Assembly (NCBI GenBank): GCA_033442325.1
Contig: JAWQFM010000035.1
Coordinates: forward strand, 721,884-748,150
Source of the DNA: Salpingoeca rosetta
Lineage: Eukaryota > Protista > Choanoflagellata
DNA: 26,267 bases
Direction: 5' to 3'
Shown in pieces: positions 13,301 to 22,300 of this stretch (position 1 is its first letter; each line of letters opens with the position of its first letter). The notes below the pieces were generated by a model that made no database searches, was not told the origin of the DNA, and saw only the letters and a program-made list of their open reading frames with translations. The position numbers and the translations under genes were made by a program.

Positions 13301-16300
13301 CCCAACAGCGATAACGTGTATTGCTATCAGGTGCGGTCATGTGTGCGTGTGTGTGTGTGTGTGTGCACGTGCGTGTGTGTGTGTGTGTGTGTGTGTGTGT
13401 GTGTGTGTGTGTGTGTGTGTGTGTGTGTGTGTGTGTGTGTGTGTGTGTGTGTGTGTGTGTGTGTGTGTGTGTGTGTGTGTGTGTGTGTGTGTGTGTGTGT
13501 GCTTGTTCATTGAAATGCTTCACGCTGTCACCCCCCGGGGATTGCCTCGTCCTCCACACTCCCTGCTTCACTTTAAACACCTCATTCACGCGACACCGCT
13601 CTGCTTCAATCCACACCGCCCCTCAGGTCATCTCACACAACATCTGGAAGCCCGACGATGGCGCACATCTGCTGGACACCGTCAACACATACGCAACAAT
13701 GTGAGCGCCAATGCTCGCTTGGTCACGACATGATGATCCCAACCCAATATGCGCACGTGCTTGTGTGTGTGTGTGTGCTTGTGTGTGTGTGTGTGTGTGT
13801 GTGTGTGTGTGTGTGTGGTGTGTGGTGTGTGTGTGTGTGTGTGTGTGTGTTCTGTGTGTGTTCTGTGTGTGTTCTGTGTGCGTTTGTAAGTAACGTTTAC
13901 TTACCCTCAGCTCACCCCTACAGCTCATTCGACTCCCGCTCCTACGCCGGCGGTTTTGCGCCCATGCACCGAGAATACTGGTGCGTGCCTTGAGAGCAAC
14001 CGCCCTGAATACCCTCAAGCCGGCGTGTGTGTGTGTGTGTGTTTGTGTGTGTGTGTGTGTGTGTGTGTGTGTGTGTGTGTGTGTGTTTCGGTTCTGGCAC
14101 CCTTTCACCCCCTCGTGTGATCTGCGTCGAATTGGTTGCACAGGTACCCCTACTGGTCAGGTTCAACCATCTACCGGGTACGCAAGGCTTGTGATGGTGT
14201 CTTGACGTAGCGTTGCTGTGGTTGTTATCTTTCACTTTCAGGTGTTCAGGCACTCTCTCTTTCTCCTCTCTTGCTGGCATACATGTGTGTGTCTGTCTAC
14301 CTGTGTGTGTGCCCGTGTCTGACTGGCTCTCTCACACACACATACTTTACACACACATACTCTACACACGCACACTTACATACTCTACACACACACACAC
14401 ACACGCACACGCACACGCACACACACGCACACACATACTCTACACACCCCAACTGGCAATTGCAGTACACGTGGAAGGGCTACTACATTGGCGCGTTCAA
14501 TGCTGTGAATGGTGTTGGAAGCATCCGCCAGCTGTGGGGATCGCCCGACTCGCCCCACTACTACCTGGCTGCCAGCAACTACATCTACAAGGCCACGTGG
14601 CCGCAGAACCAGCTGGTGTGGTCCTACAACCTTGGCACGACTGCTGGCGGTGTCACCACGCACGGCGACAGCGTGTATGCTATGCGAGCAACGACCAACC
14701 TCGTGTATGTGCTGCGCGCGACGGATGGCGAGCTGCAGCGCACGTTCAACCTGGACTCGTCGAGCGGCGATAACTTCTCCAACATGTTCGGTGGCTTGGT
14801 TGCTGTCAAGGGCAGGCTGTTCCGTGGCGGCAGAGACAACGCCAGGTTCTACAGGTCAGTCGGCGGTAGTGTTGCGATATGTGTGATAGTGTGATAGTGT
14901 GAACATGCGTGGACGCGTGTGTGTCTGTGTATGCATGTGTATCCCATGCGTCATGCGTAACAACGACCCTCATGGTACATCCTATGTGTATGTTTGCGCG
15001 CGCGCACACACACACACACACACACGCGCGCACACACAACACACACAGGTACGACCTGGAGACAGGGACGTATGACGGCATGTACTTCAGCGTGGCGACG
15101 AGCATCTACAGCTGCTCTTTCAACGGGCAAGACATCTGCGTGAGTGGTGGGGATCCACCGTTCGCTGCTACACCGTCGTCAGCCACAACGTCTTCTACGA
15201 CACGGACCGCGGCAGCCCACCGCTTATTGCCGGCTCAAAGATCCTCAACAAGGACATGAACGCACAGCTCTCCGACCTGCTGCCGTCGCACTACTTTGCC
15301 CGCTGCTACTCCGGCACTGCCGATGGCTGGAGCTCATCGACCTTCCACAGCCGCTGCGACAATAAGGGCCCAACACTCACCATTGGCCGCAACCGAGACA
15401 CGGGCCGTGTGTTTGGCGGCTTCACTCACATTCCTTGGACAACCAGCTCAGGGTGCGTGTAACGTGTGTGTATTTGGGGGGGGGGTCATGTTTGGGGTGG
15501 TGGTAAATGCCGGCCTGTGCGTGCTATCGTTGGTTGCGTTGCCTCACATGCGATGCACACACACACGCACACACACACACACACACACACACACACACAC
15601 ACACACACACACACACACACACACACACACACACACACACACACACACACACACATGCCACCCCCTCAGGTACCGCACCGACTACGCCGCGTTCCTTTTC
15701 CGTTTCAACGGCGATCAAGTTGAGCGCACGGATCAGGATCTCTCATCTCCCGGCAACGCCGTGTACCACACGAGCTCCTACTGCCCGACATTCGGTGAGG
15801 TCTATCAAGGGCGTGATCAGCGAGTTGTGGCGCGTATGAGGAGAGATGGCATGTGGAGGTCGTGGCATGCAGGTCGTTTGGCGTGAAGAACATTGTTCAA
15901 CTTTCCCTTGGCTCACCACACACACACACACACACACACACACACACACACACACACACACACACACACACACACACACACACACACACGCACGCACGCA
16001 CGCACGCACGCACACACACACACACACACACACACACACACACACACACACGCACACACACACACGCACACACACAACCAACCAACCAGGCGGTGGCCAC
16101 GACCTTCGTTTCTACTCCAACTGCGAGCGCGTGACGGCGAACCCCAACAGCTATCGAATCGACACCGGAGGTTACTCCAACTCCTGGGCTGGCGGCACAA
16201 ACGACTTTTACGTCGATGAAATGGAGGTGTTCTACCTGACCGAGGACTCGTTTGACCCGTGCGATGGCGTTGTGTGCCCAACGAACACGTGCACCCCCAC

Positions 16301-19300: not shown

Positions 19301-22300
19301 CGTGCACCACCTTGAACATACGCTCACGAGTCGATGCTTCCCATGGTGTCAACCGATGCCCTGCAATACTTCTTCCGCCTCCCCTTGCCACAGCAACTTT
19401 GGGCGTACAACTTTGGCACGACCGTTGGCGGTGTGTCGCTGCACGATGGTGTCGTGTATGCCATGCAGAGCGGCAGCTACAACATCCGCGTCCTCGACTG
19501 GGAGACGGGCCAACTCCAGCGCTCTTTCTCGTCAGTGCATTCGGAGGCACTTCCTCTGTGTACCTGCTCCGTGTGTGTGTGTGTGTGTGTGTGTGTGTGT
19601 GTGTGTCTGCGTGTGAGTGTGGTGTGTACCTGCTCCGTGTGTGTGTGTGTGTGGTGTGTGTGTGTATGTGTGTGTGAGTGTAGTTGTGCTGAAGTTAGAC
19701 CTACTTGCCGTGGTCGCTGTGGTCTCACGAACGCCACTCTTCCTTGCACGCCCTGCTCCCCCCTCACACCACGAACAGGCTGAGCGGCTCGCCTCAAGGG
19801 TTCTCGAACATCTACGGCACATTTGCAGTCGTGAGCAACAAGATCTTCGTCGGCGACTACAACGACAACGACATGTACCGGTGAGCGTGATGGCTCTTGT
19901 GTTGCTGTTGTGTGGTCATGTTAGTGAACTGTGCTTCTGCTGTGTAACGATGCGCCTGCATACATGCACACGCACTCAAGCAAACACACGCTCATACGCG
20001 CGCACACACAATTCACACACACGCGCGTTTGCCTTGCCACTGTGCCGTTTAGATTTGATCTTCAAACGTATCAGTACGACAACGTGCATTGGACGGCCTC
20101 GTACCAGACACAAAAGCTTGGCTTTGACGGCCAGCATCTCTGCATCGCTTCAGGGGATCCTGTCGAATGCTGGAGAAGTGAGTCGCCGCGCTCTCGCTTG
20201 TTTGTCTTCATTTTCTGTCGCATGGCTCTGGCCACGAGTTACATCTGCATCTGTGTCATGCTTGTCTCTGTGCTATCTCCGATACATGCCCTCATCCCTT
20301 TAACTCATCATCACTTCAACCCCTCGGCCAACGCCACCCCCGTCTTGTTCACCGCACGTGATCACCGCAGTTGTGGACGAGAATGTGTACGGCGACCGCA
20401 CCGTCATCTCTGCCAATGCGCCGGCACAGGCCATCATGGGCTCCGAGATCCTGACAAAGGACATGAACCTGGCCATCTCCAAGGAGGTGTCGCCCAACAG
20501 CGATTCGAGCTTCAAGCTCTGCTTCCGCGCATCAGACCACGGCTTCTCCGGCTCCACCTTCCACGCACGCTGCGACAACAAGGGCCAGACGGTTGTCGTT
20601 GTCCGTTCGACAGAGGGCAGCCCGCAGGGACCGCGCGTATTTGGCGCCTTTGCTCCCAACAGCTGGCGCTCCGACACGTCCACGTATCTCCGTGCCGATG
20701 ATGCCTTCCTCTTCCGCTTTGTCAACAACGGCCAATTCGAGCGCACAGATCTCCTCAACTATCCGGAGTACGCCCAGTACACGCGCCCAGACTACTGCCC
20801 TGAGTTCGGTGCGTTGTCGTCGTGTTTGTGTTTGTGCATGTATCTTGTGTTGGTGTTGATGGGCTCGGTGCTCTGGCCTTCGTTGCTGGCGTGCGCAAGT
20901 CCGTTTGCACACACACATGCACTCACACACACACTCACACACACACACACACTCTCATTGACGCACATGTAGGTAACTCTGATTTCCGCATGTCAACCGA
21001 CTGTCGGTCTGGATACACCAGCACGAATGCTTACACGTGAGTCAAACCCATGCATGTGTGCTTTGGCTTCCAGCGTCGTGTTGGTTACAATACATCTGCA
21101 AGCAACGATGCTGTCGTTTCCTCATACTCATCGCCATCCATGCTGTTGCGTGTATCCGTGCTATTGCTGAGCACAGTGTGCACCAGAGCAGCAGCACGTA
21201 CAACAACGAGTGGTTGACTGGCTCCTACAACAGCTGGCAAGTGGACGACGTCGAGGTCTTCTACCGCGTCGACGAATCCGCAGATCCATGCTTCGACGTG
21301 GTGCGTACAGCAGCGCTCCCGTGCAGATGGCACGTAATTGTGAGTGGATGTGGGGTTGCGTTTGGTCAAAACTACCAGTGTCTCGAATCCCTTCGTGGCA
21401 ATCTCATCCTCGTGTGTTGTGTTTGGTCCAAACGACACAGACATGTGATCCACCAATGGGTCAGTGCAAACTGCCCGGTCGCTGCGTCAGCGGCGAGTGC
21501 GTCTATGATGTCGCCCCGAATGGCACCCCATGCAACGACGGTCAGTATTGCGAAGTGTGTGGGGGGGGGGGGATCTATGCGTTTGAGAGCATCGAGTCAC
21601 CATTGCGCGCCTCCTCGTTCCTCACCAACAAACACACAAACGTGCCACTCCCCTTCGAACAACGCACCCTTTGCAGGCGACGATGCGACGGTGTTTGACA
21701 CGTGCCAGGACACCGTCTGCGTTGGCCGCCATCCCGTCATCACGGAGGACAACCAGCACACGTTCACTGGCCTCGACCCGTACACCACCTACGCCTTCCG
21801 TGTGGCTGCCCGCACCGTCCGCGGTCAGGGCCCGGCCTCTGACGCCGTGCGCGCTCGCACCCTCTCCGGCACCCCAACAGGTTGGCGCTTGTGCGTGTGT
21901 GTCGTGTGTGTGTGTGTGTGTCGTGTGTGTGTGTGTGTGTGTGTGTGTGTGTGTGTGTGTGTGTGTGTGTGTGTGTGTGTGTGTGTGTGTGTGTCCGTGA
22001 AGTTGTAACTTAGATGTCCTTGTCCTTTGGGCATGCTTGCTTGTACTCAGCTTCACTCACACAGGGCCCTCACTCGCTTACAACCCCCCTCCCCTTTCTT
22101 TCCCTCCTCAACCCTTCAGGTCCACCCCAGGATGTGGTGGCGCGAGCGGCAGCAACGACCGTGTTGCACATCACGTGGAAGCAGCCGCTGTTTGGCGAGC
22201 GCCACGGCACCATCTCATCGTACAAGCTGTGGGTGCAGCACCTGAACAGCATGCGCCAACCAGCGGGCACACCCTGGACCATCGTCACGGGCAACGACCT

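Follow-up and report, generated by a model that had tools for sequence, protein, structure and literature searches.

Characterized TLDc proteins (OXR1/OXR2, NCOA7, TBC1D24/Skywalker, mEAK7 and the yeast proteins Oxr1p and Rtc5p) lack a signal peptide and act in the cytosol, where they bind the V1 sector of the V-ATPase. Can a TLDc domain also work outside the cell? The question is raised by a locus of the choanoflagellate Salpingoeca rosetta in which two TLDc domains lie downstream of a predicted signal peptide. We analyzed a stretch of 26,267 nucleotides (G000:C35:721884-748150; hereafter the window), which forms the last 26 kb of its contig in the 55.4-Mb S. rosetta genome. When the exon of the second TLDc domain was searched among 1.84 billion representatives, the top match was P0001 (EGD79834.1 / XP_004988782.1), labeled in the database as 'hypothetical protein PTSG_13098, partial [Salpingoeca rosetta]', and this protein fitted the window exon by exon. 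The gene, PTSG_13098, runs on the + strand from 10295 to at least 22562 in ~32 exons. Taken as a whole, the explanation that we favor, with somewhat better than even confidence, is that PTSG_13098 is a giant cell-surface receptor of the choanoflagellate, of which the window encodes ~1950 residues from the N-terminus.

Two TLDc domains in PTSG_13098

An earlier, sequence-only reading of the window had placed two TLDc domains between 15230 and 21265, and mapping of the NCBI model on the window gave nearly the same limits, 15232 and 21264. TLDc domain 1 (15232-16235, + strand) is spread over three exons (15232-15453, 15671-15796 and 16092-16235), as is TLDc domain 2 (20439-21264, + strand; exons 20439-20810, 20975-21037 and 21178-21264). 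The splice junctions of both domains are all GT-AG and all in phase. The window exons were searched one at a time against the Pfam TLD family (PF07534), which has a cut-off of 24.5 bits. The exon piece 15076-15459 matched the family with an E-value of 1.3e-12 (48.4 bits) and the piece 20304-20798 with an E-value of 6.8e-16 (59.1 bits), both well above the cut-off, and the tail exon of TLDc2 (21127-21300) gave a weak match to profile positions 140-167. The ortholog of the gene in Microstomoeca roanoka (P0002) scored 223.7 bits over three TLD domains.

A phmmer search of the PDB sequences with the TLDc2 exon gave no match, but a profile of the choanoflagellate TLDc type did reach the solved structures of mEAK7, NCOA7, zebrafish OXR2 and Skywalker with E-values of 1e-11 to 4e-9. 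The fold was assessed on P0108, a close environmental homolog of the window domains with the same four cysteines (Cys), and was judged by the TLDc beta-sandwich seen in 4acj, 7obp and 6r82. The AlphaFold model of P0108 had a predicted local distance difference test score (pLDDT) of >90 across the domain. Foldseek returned 4acj as its top match (E 7e-10, template modeling (TM) score 0.79, root-mean-square deviation 2.5 Å), followed by NCOA7, mEAK7, Skywalker, Oxr1p and Rtc5p. The core TLDc motifs (G..s..FH..C/D..G.T, FGG, W, GPxFG and the terminal E-V-F/W) were kept, with GPxFG reading CPxFG here; in the alignment (A1) the F, C, G and W were invariant and the G, H, D, T, F and G nearly so. These analyses confirmed that both window domains are genuine TLDc domains, and an ordinary beta-sandwich is predicted for them.

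Predicted placement of the TLDc domains outside the cell

The first coding exon (10295-10378, + strand) encodes a 28-residue signal peptide, recognized by hydropathy and the AXA rule, with the h-region AIAIVFPLIGLLALA and a cleavage site between AHA and E. A hydropathy scan of the NCBI model detected no further transmembrane-like segment. This is in agreement with the sequence-only reading, which had described a signal peptide without a visible transmembrane helix but had feared that a helix might be hidden in the assembly gap at 12519-12618. Comparison with the ortholog and with a second S. rosetta copy of the gene, the C31 paralog described below, indicated that this gap covers an intronic CA repeat and the first 2-3 codons of a propeller exon, and no helix.

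The manner in which the TLDc domains are embedded also bears on their location. Each lies within a block, or cassette, that is inserted in the middle of a fibronectin type III (FN3) domain. The FN3 piece ahead of cassette 1 (split FN3 number 1, N-terminal half, 11605-11760) corresponds to positions 2-38 of the 84-position fn3 profile, while the piece behind it (16498-16632) corresponds to positions 48-83 (E 1.6e-8) and the piece behind cassette 2 (21724-21882) to positions 48-82 (E 4.6e-8). The N-terminal half of split FN3 number 2 was assigned to 17506-17752 from the exon map, and its 22-residue piece at 17687-17752 had no Pfam match on its own. Since the two halves of one FN3 domain need to be on the same side of the membrane, each cassette shares the compartment of the FN3 domains.

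The C-terminal helix and the cytoplasmic tail lie beyond the end of the window contig, and we followed them in two relatives. The M. roanoka protein P0002 is a complete open reading frame (ORF) of a transcript, 4500 aa long. Besides its signal peptide it contains three TLDc domains, TNFR-type repeats and no fewer than 18 fn3 stretches, with one transmembrane helix, at 4420, and a tail that includes TNPVY; residues 1812-3696 of this protein are collinear with the window. The start of the S. rosetta gene, with its own signal peptide, matches P0002 residue 1812; residues 1-1800 of P0002 are an N-terminal extension of ~1800 residues with more FN3 domains and a third cassette, made of two propellers and a four-Cys TLDc. 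The C31 paralog (G000:C31:763700-777820, loci L012-L013) matches window positions 10907-22562 with 92-94% DNA identity, introns included, and retains the 3' end, which encodes TNFR-like and furin-like repeats followed by a helix and by a tail with SNPAY. In both relatives every TLDc domain stands ahead of the single helix.

Two other choanoflagellate proteins carry the same TLDc type. PTSG_09376 of S. rosetta (locus L005) has a signal peptide, fn3, a four-Cys TLDc, fn3, GPS and 7tm_2, which makes its TLDc part of the ectodomain of a G protein-coupled receptor of the adhesion type (aGPCR). A word search with the TLDc region of PTSG_09376 returned this protein alone and no further aGPCR relatives. 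In Salpingoeca infusionum the TLDc stands at the end of a secreted coiled-coil protein. The extracellular placement of the TLDc domains, already proposed from the window alone, is thus well supported, because the signal peptide, the lack of an internal helix, the FN3 nesting, the type I topology of the ortholog and the C31 paralog, and the paralog in an aGPCR ectodomain all agree.

Architecture of the cassettes

Both cassettes have the same order: Cys-rich module, one or more propellers, TLDc, Cys-rich module. Cassette 1 (all features on the + strand) starts with an entry module of 8 Cys (11761-11976). It continues with propeller unit A (12620-13333; exons 12620-13072 and 13241-13333), which has 62% identity to M. 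roanoka residues 2155-2301 and whose counterpart in the ortholog has PQQ_2 matches. Propeller unit B (14145-15152; exons 14145-14177, 14466-14855 and 15050-15152), delimited by ortholog alignment and exon map, ends in the conserved GQDICVS...V.CY link and leads into TLDc1, and the cassette closes with an exit module (16236-16395) that is interrupted by an assembly gap. In cassette 2, laid out from the exon map and, for the propeller, from the ortholog alignment as well, an entry module of three exons (17922-18470, + strand) is followed by propeller unit C (18471-20176, six exons, ending in GQHLCIASGDPVECW), TLDc2 and the exit module (21265-21723).

The window propeller pieces gave weak PQQ_2-type matches on their own, and matches with E-values of 1.4e-10 and 8.7e-9 were obtained with the M. 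roanoka ortholog and P0066. In the model of P0066 one propeller unit (residues 174-384) consists of 20 strands, which make five blades, and Foldseek with this propeller placed BamB and designer propellers at the top. From this model, the partner of the TLDc domain is predicted to be a five-bladed PQQ/BamB-like propeller, present once or twice per cassette. P0066, named 'sugar lactone lactonase YvrE' in the database, was considered as an independent architecture and rejected, because what its 3.3-kb metagenome contig carries is a piece of a homologous gene. In all S. rosetta copies of the four-Cys TLDc type, an identical kind of last blade and link (RYDL..G.Y...F.G..IC.S....V.CY) stands in front of the TLDc, in many cases within one exon with it, so that the pairing with a propeller suggested by the sequence-only reading extends to every copy of this type in the genome.

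The Cys-rich modules (11761-11976, 16236-16395, 17922-18470 and 21265-21723) have 8 Cys and end in DGTxCDD...D.C..G.C.G. No Pfam family matched the modules of either cassette at E-values up to 1, and they may be small disulfide domains of an undescribed kind, acting in pairs.

Assembly gaps and the frame break

We examined whether the cassettes are read continuously. The gap at 16396-16495 lies outside both TLDc domains, in the Cys-rich module just after TLDc1, and its flanks align to P0002 residues 2698-2799 and 2813-2892. Where the window has 100 N, the C31 paralog has 30 nucleotides inside one exon. With the 1 and 2 nucleotides at its edges these make 11 codons (Cys module and linker), and the two sides of the gap are therefore continuous and in frame. 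The third gap, at 22563-22662, marks the end of the gene as assembled; the sequence beyond it, up to the contig end at 26267, is unrelated. Almost all introns of the window contain long (CA)n or (TG)n microsatellite tracts, and each of the 3 assembly gaps abuts one.

A frame shift was located at ~15152-15154, where one base is missing relative to the paralog at locus L020 and exactly where the ortholog alignment continues free of gaps. A short intron at 15140-15182 was considered as the cause and rejected, because the paralogs keep a single frame throughout and the ortholog alignment has no gap there. As the draft has three gaps, the simplest reading of the break is an error of assembly. XP_004988782.1 covers it by a 23-nt pseudo-intron (15161-15183), by which the conserved Cys of the link is lost, and splices over the 16396 gap from 16308 to 16560, by which half a Cys module and part of an FN3 domain are lost. 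The public protein is wrong at two places because of this pseudo-intron and this splice across the gap, and its C-terminus is truncated.

The C31 paralog in turn is without the stretch equal to window 15047-15989 and so misses the final propeller blade together with TLDc1 exons one and two. Either this copy is a recent duplicate with a deletion or its assembly collapsed across CA repeats. Conversely, the window copy could itself be a pseudogene, a decaying duplicate of a functional C31 gene, in which case its TLDc domains would be uninformative about the working protein. The one-base break fits such decay, as do the absence of the 3' end with the helix ahead of unrelated sequence and the existence of so similar a copy, introns included, on C31. 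Nevertheless, the remaining exons are open, the GT-AG junctions are intact and the Cys are conserved; the break and the truncation occur in a gapped draft at a contig end; and the copy that misses two thirds of TLDc1 is the one on C31, not the one in the window. We regard decay of the window copy as unlikely, if worth keeping in mind, and the family-level conclusion, which rests on the ortholog and ~10 paralogous domains, is unaffected either way.

The four cysteines of the TLDc domains

TLDc1 has exactly four Cys, with codons at 15304, 15355, 15782 and 16122, and TLDc2 likewise has exactly four (20520, 20571, 20796 and 21002), at positions that match those of TLDc1. The codon map thus bears out the earlier statement that both copies have four Cys at matching positions. 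For comparison, we collected 323 TLDc domains from the 150 nearest proteins. Cys1 stands where other TLDc domains have the conserved Leu of LLY, and this column holds L in 160, C in 63 and I in 47 of the domains. The Cys3 site (CPxFG in the window) is usually the G of GPxFG in the nearest TLDc domains. The residue columns therefore agree with the sequence-only reading in what it took for the typical TLDc residues, L[L/I]Y and YGP.FG. Its description of the Cys as added held for Cys1, Cys3 and Cys4 and failed for Cys2: this residue (RCDNKG in the window) is a general TLDc cysteine, present in 84% of the 323 domains and also in mEAK7.

The distribution of the Cys suggested how they might be paired. 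Nearly all Cys1-bearing domains (49/50) also have Cys2, and in 13 of these Cys1 and Cys2 are the sole Cys. Even Cys counts were found in 34/49 Cys1-bearing domains versus 66/179 others. The Cys1-Cys2 pair was commoner in proteins with a signal peptide, as called by a crude rule (10/17 versus 20/114 proteins), and was also found in proteins with EGF, LamG, MACPF, collagen and Stig1 domains. At least 7 S. rosetta copies, which have all four Cys, contain Cys3 together with Cys4, as do several environmental fragments and two of the M. roanoka domains. M. roanoka domain 2, the ortholog of window TLDc1, has neither, and the same holds for S. infusionum P0144 and S. rosetta locus L019; no complete choanoflagellate-type TLDc domain with just one of the two was seen. 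Locus L019 (G000:C32:686875-687072) holds a TLDc with Cys1 and Cys2 and without Cys3 and Cys4 in a 468-residue open frame, has no propeller link ahead of the TLDc and is a different secreted-type TLDc gene.

By these sequence comparisons, Cys1 appears to track secreted proteins, bacterial ones included, and the Cys3 and Cys4 pair appears to be choanoflagellate-specific and gained or lost together. The domains are probably held by two disulfides, Cys1-Cys2 and Cys3-Cys4. The stabilization by disulfides that the sequence-only reading proposed is in this way supported indirectly, by the co-occurrence of Cys3 and Cys4, by the 13 domains with Cys1 and Cys2 alone and by the bias to even counts. The first bond would tie strand 1 to the end of helix 1, while the second would flank the GPxFG hairpin. 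Alternatively, the extra Cys could be free, redox-active or metal-binding thiols rather than structural disulfides, as TLDc proteins are linked to oxidative stress and reactive Cys in OXR1 have been discussed (PMC5614904). We consider this improbable: the domains are placed in an oxidizing compartment among disulfide-type modules, Cys counts are biased to even numbers and Cys are gained and lost two at a time, and the Cys1-Cys2 pair goes with signal peptides, those of bacterial lipoproteins included.

Proposed working of the protein

In the encoded protein the signal peptide, once cleaved, is followed by an FN3 array, and two of its FN3 domains are interrupted in a loop by a folded insert. Within this insert the TLDc domain is preceded by a Cys-rich module and then by one or two propellers of the predicted five-bladed PQQ/BamB-like kind, and is followed by a second Cys-rich module. 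Propeller and TLDc would form one rigid ligand-binding head, shown twice on the FN3 stalk by means of the paired Cys modules, and the extracellular TLDc would thereby act as a binding module. The architecture suggests a receptor for adhesion or uptake, because in both the ortholog and the paralog a single helix is followed by a C-terminal tail with hydrophobic-x-NPxY. This signal is used by the tails of the LDL receptor and the integrins to recruit PTB-domain adaptors, and the tail of the present receptor may do the same.

Members of the LDL-receptor family combine EGF modules around a six-bladed YWTD propeller with a single helix and an FxNPxY tail. By analogy, the gene described here has a propeller flanked by small disulfide modules and, as seen in the ortholog and paralog, type I topology and a hydrophobic-x-NPxY tail. 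It differs in its predicted five-bladed PQQ/BamB-like propeller, its FN3 scaffold and its lack of LDL-A repeats. There were no LDL-A or YWTD Pfam matches in the window gene or the ortholog, and no sequence relationship to the LDL-receptor family was found. PTSG_09376 resembles the window gene in carrying a four-Cys TLDc in its N-terminal fragment ahead of GPS/7tm_2, but the window gene is not a GPCR.

Compared with the cytosolic TLDc proteins, the window domains belong to the same Pfam family, have the same fold (TM ~0.8 to 4acj for the P0108 model) and keep the core motifs, including the helix-1 Cys of mEAK7. They differ in the signal peptide, in the FN3 and Cys-rich modules, in the fusion to a propeller, in the Cys that replaces the conserved Leu and in the extra Cys pair around GPxFG, and sequence identity between the two types is ~18%. 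The Pfam domains found beside TLD were fn3, PQQ_2-like and TNFR_c6, and the partner features of characterized TLDc proteins (LysM/GRAM, TBC, or N-myristoylation with an EF-hand-like region) were not encountered. A TLDc domain in an ectodomain would have no contact with the cytosolic V1 sector, and the predicted extracellular topology therefore argues against V1 binding by the window domains.

Some points weigh against the receptor explanation. With the frame break at ~15152-15154 and the missing 3' end, the window copy could be defective. The NPxY tail is seen in the paralog and ortholog only. Finally, the Cys statistics were drawn from related, non-independent domains, and so overstate independence, and used a crude signal-peptide rule.

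The extracellular TLDc could also be an enzyme acting on an external substrate, as the word 'catalytic' in the original domain name implies. In favor of this, the core motifs (F, H, C, D..G.T, FGG and W) are kept with little or no variation. On the other hand, no TLDc domain has been found to act as an enzyme (PMC5614904), and the relatives place the domain among FN3, lectin, cadherin-like and Ig-like domains, a context typical of adhesion proteins; enzymatic action thus seems to us quite improbable. A separate signal-less or cytosolic product, or a hidden helix that puts the TLDc domains inside the cell, for which three assembly gaps and a patched NCBI model leave some room, is scarcely credible given that both intragenic gaps are explained by the paralog and ortholog with no helix, that the FN3 halves around each cassette need the same membrane side, and that the M. 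roanoka transcript joins signal peptide, FN3, three TLDc domains and helix in one ORF on one mRNA.

Bacterial relatives and published descriptions

Outside the choanoflagellates, the nearest long relatives are proteins of 5400-6500 residues (P0057, P0165, P0167, P0050 and P0075), whose lipobox N-termini identify them as lipoproteins of bacteria. In these proteins, TLDc domains with the Cys1-Cys2 pair are combined with PQQ_2-like units and MopE-type Cys motifs. They have 28-34% identity to the choanoflagellate protein in the propeller unit and 36-41% in the TLDc. In P0165 a single alignment runs through the propeller and then the TLDc. A named bacterial case is P0169 from Roseivirga thermotolerans, annotated as a 'TLD domain-containing protein'; beside its TLDc it has domains of the Ig-like, cadherin-like and C-type lectin kinds, and its relative P0168 ends in a type IX secretion system (T9SS) sorting domain (Por_Secre_tail). 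Export is predicted for all these uncharacterized bacterial surface proteins, from a lipobox, a signal peptide or a Por_Secre_tail, as it is for the window gene. Unlike the latter, they have neither the FN3 nesting nor the Cys3-Cys4 pair, and the Bacteroidota ones are without any Cys.

The sequence-only reading had regarded the TLDc domains as redeployed to the outside. This was not supported as stated: lipoproteins and T9SS proteins of bacteria already carry secreted TLDc, some with the Cys1-Cys2 pair and the same propeller partner, and an OXR1-like ancestor is therefore not the necessary source of the choanoflagellate TLDc. In a tree of 100 TLDc domains, which included no OXR1-type outgroup sequence, ten choanoflagellate-type domains formed one clade with a Shimodaira-Hasegawa-like approximate likelihood ratio test (SH-aLRT) support of 99. 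The bacterial domains fell on the other side, and the tree did not place the sister group. A bacterial origin of the choanoflagellate TLDc was considered on this tree, which neither demonstrated nor excluded a transfer. It is a possible, if rather doubtful, view that the surface proteins of bacteria and the receptors of choanoflagellates share propeller-TLDc as an old extracellular binding module, which gene transfer from bacterial prey may have carried between them, and that TLDc would be primarily a secreted recognition fold, with the cytosolic V-ATPase regulators as one specialized branch.

Full-text searching of the literature for extracellular, secreted, disulfide, choanoflagellate or bacterial TLDc found nothing. 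The words extracellular and secreted are absent from the TLDc reviews of 2017 (PMC5614904) and 2026, and neither review mentions a bacterial TLDc. A study of choanoflagellate aGPCRs lists FN3 and PQQ among the ectodomain domains, and its main text does not mention TLD/TLDc (eLife 2025, PMC12716839). The ectodomain TLDc with extra Cys pairs and a propeller is already public as a hypothetical protein, with no description in the papers found.

Other features of the window

The remaining parts of PTSG_13098, all on the + strand, are FN3 domains. The first part of the long exon (10912-11604) matched Pfam fn3 in three stretches (E 2.3e-16), intact FN3 domains separate the two cassettes (16633-17505, from the ortholog alignment and exon map), and the last FN3 exons ahead of the third gap lie at 22122-22562 (from the exon map). 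Upstream of the gene, an acidic ORF at 2708-3367 (+ strand), with Asp/Glu runs followed by a Lys/Arg-rich stretch, resembles a gene for a nucleolar or chromatin-type acidic protein.

Meaning for the TLDc family and for choanoflagellates

The mechanism of TLDc domains is so far known solely from cytosolic proteins that dock on the V-ATPase. A TLDc domain in an ectodomain would mean a second, V-ATPase-independent job for the fold. Propeller and TLDc together would make a compact unit, probably stabilized by disulfides, that lends itself to expression and ligand screening. In choanoflagellates, the candidate receptors for prey, cues or cell contacts would gain a family of ~10 ectodomain modules, one of them in an adhesion GPCR.

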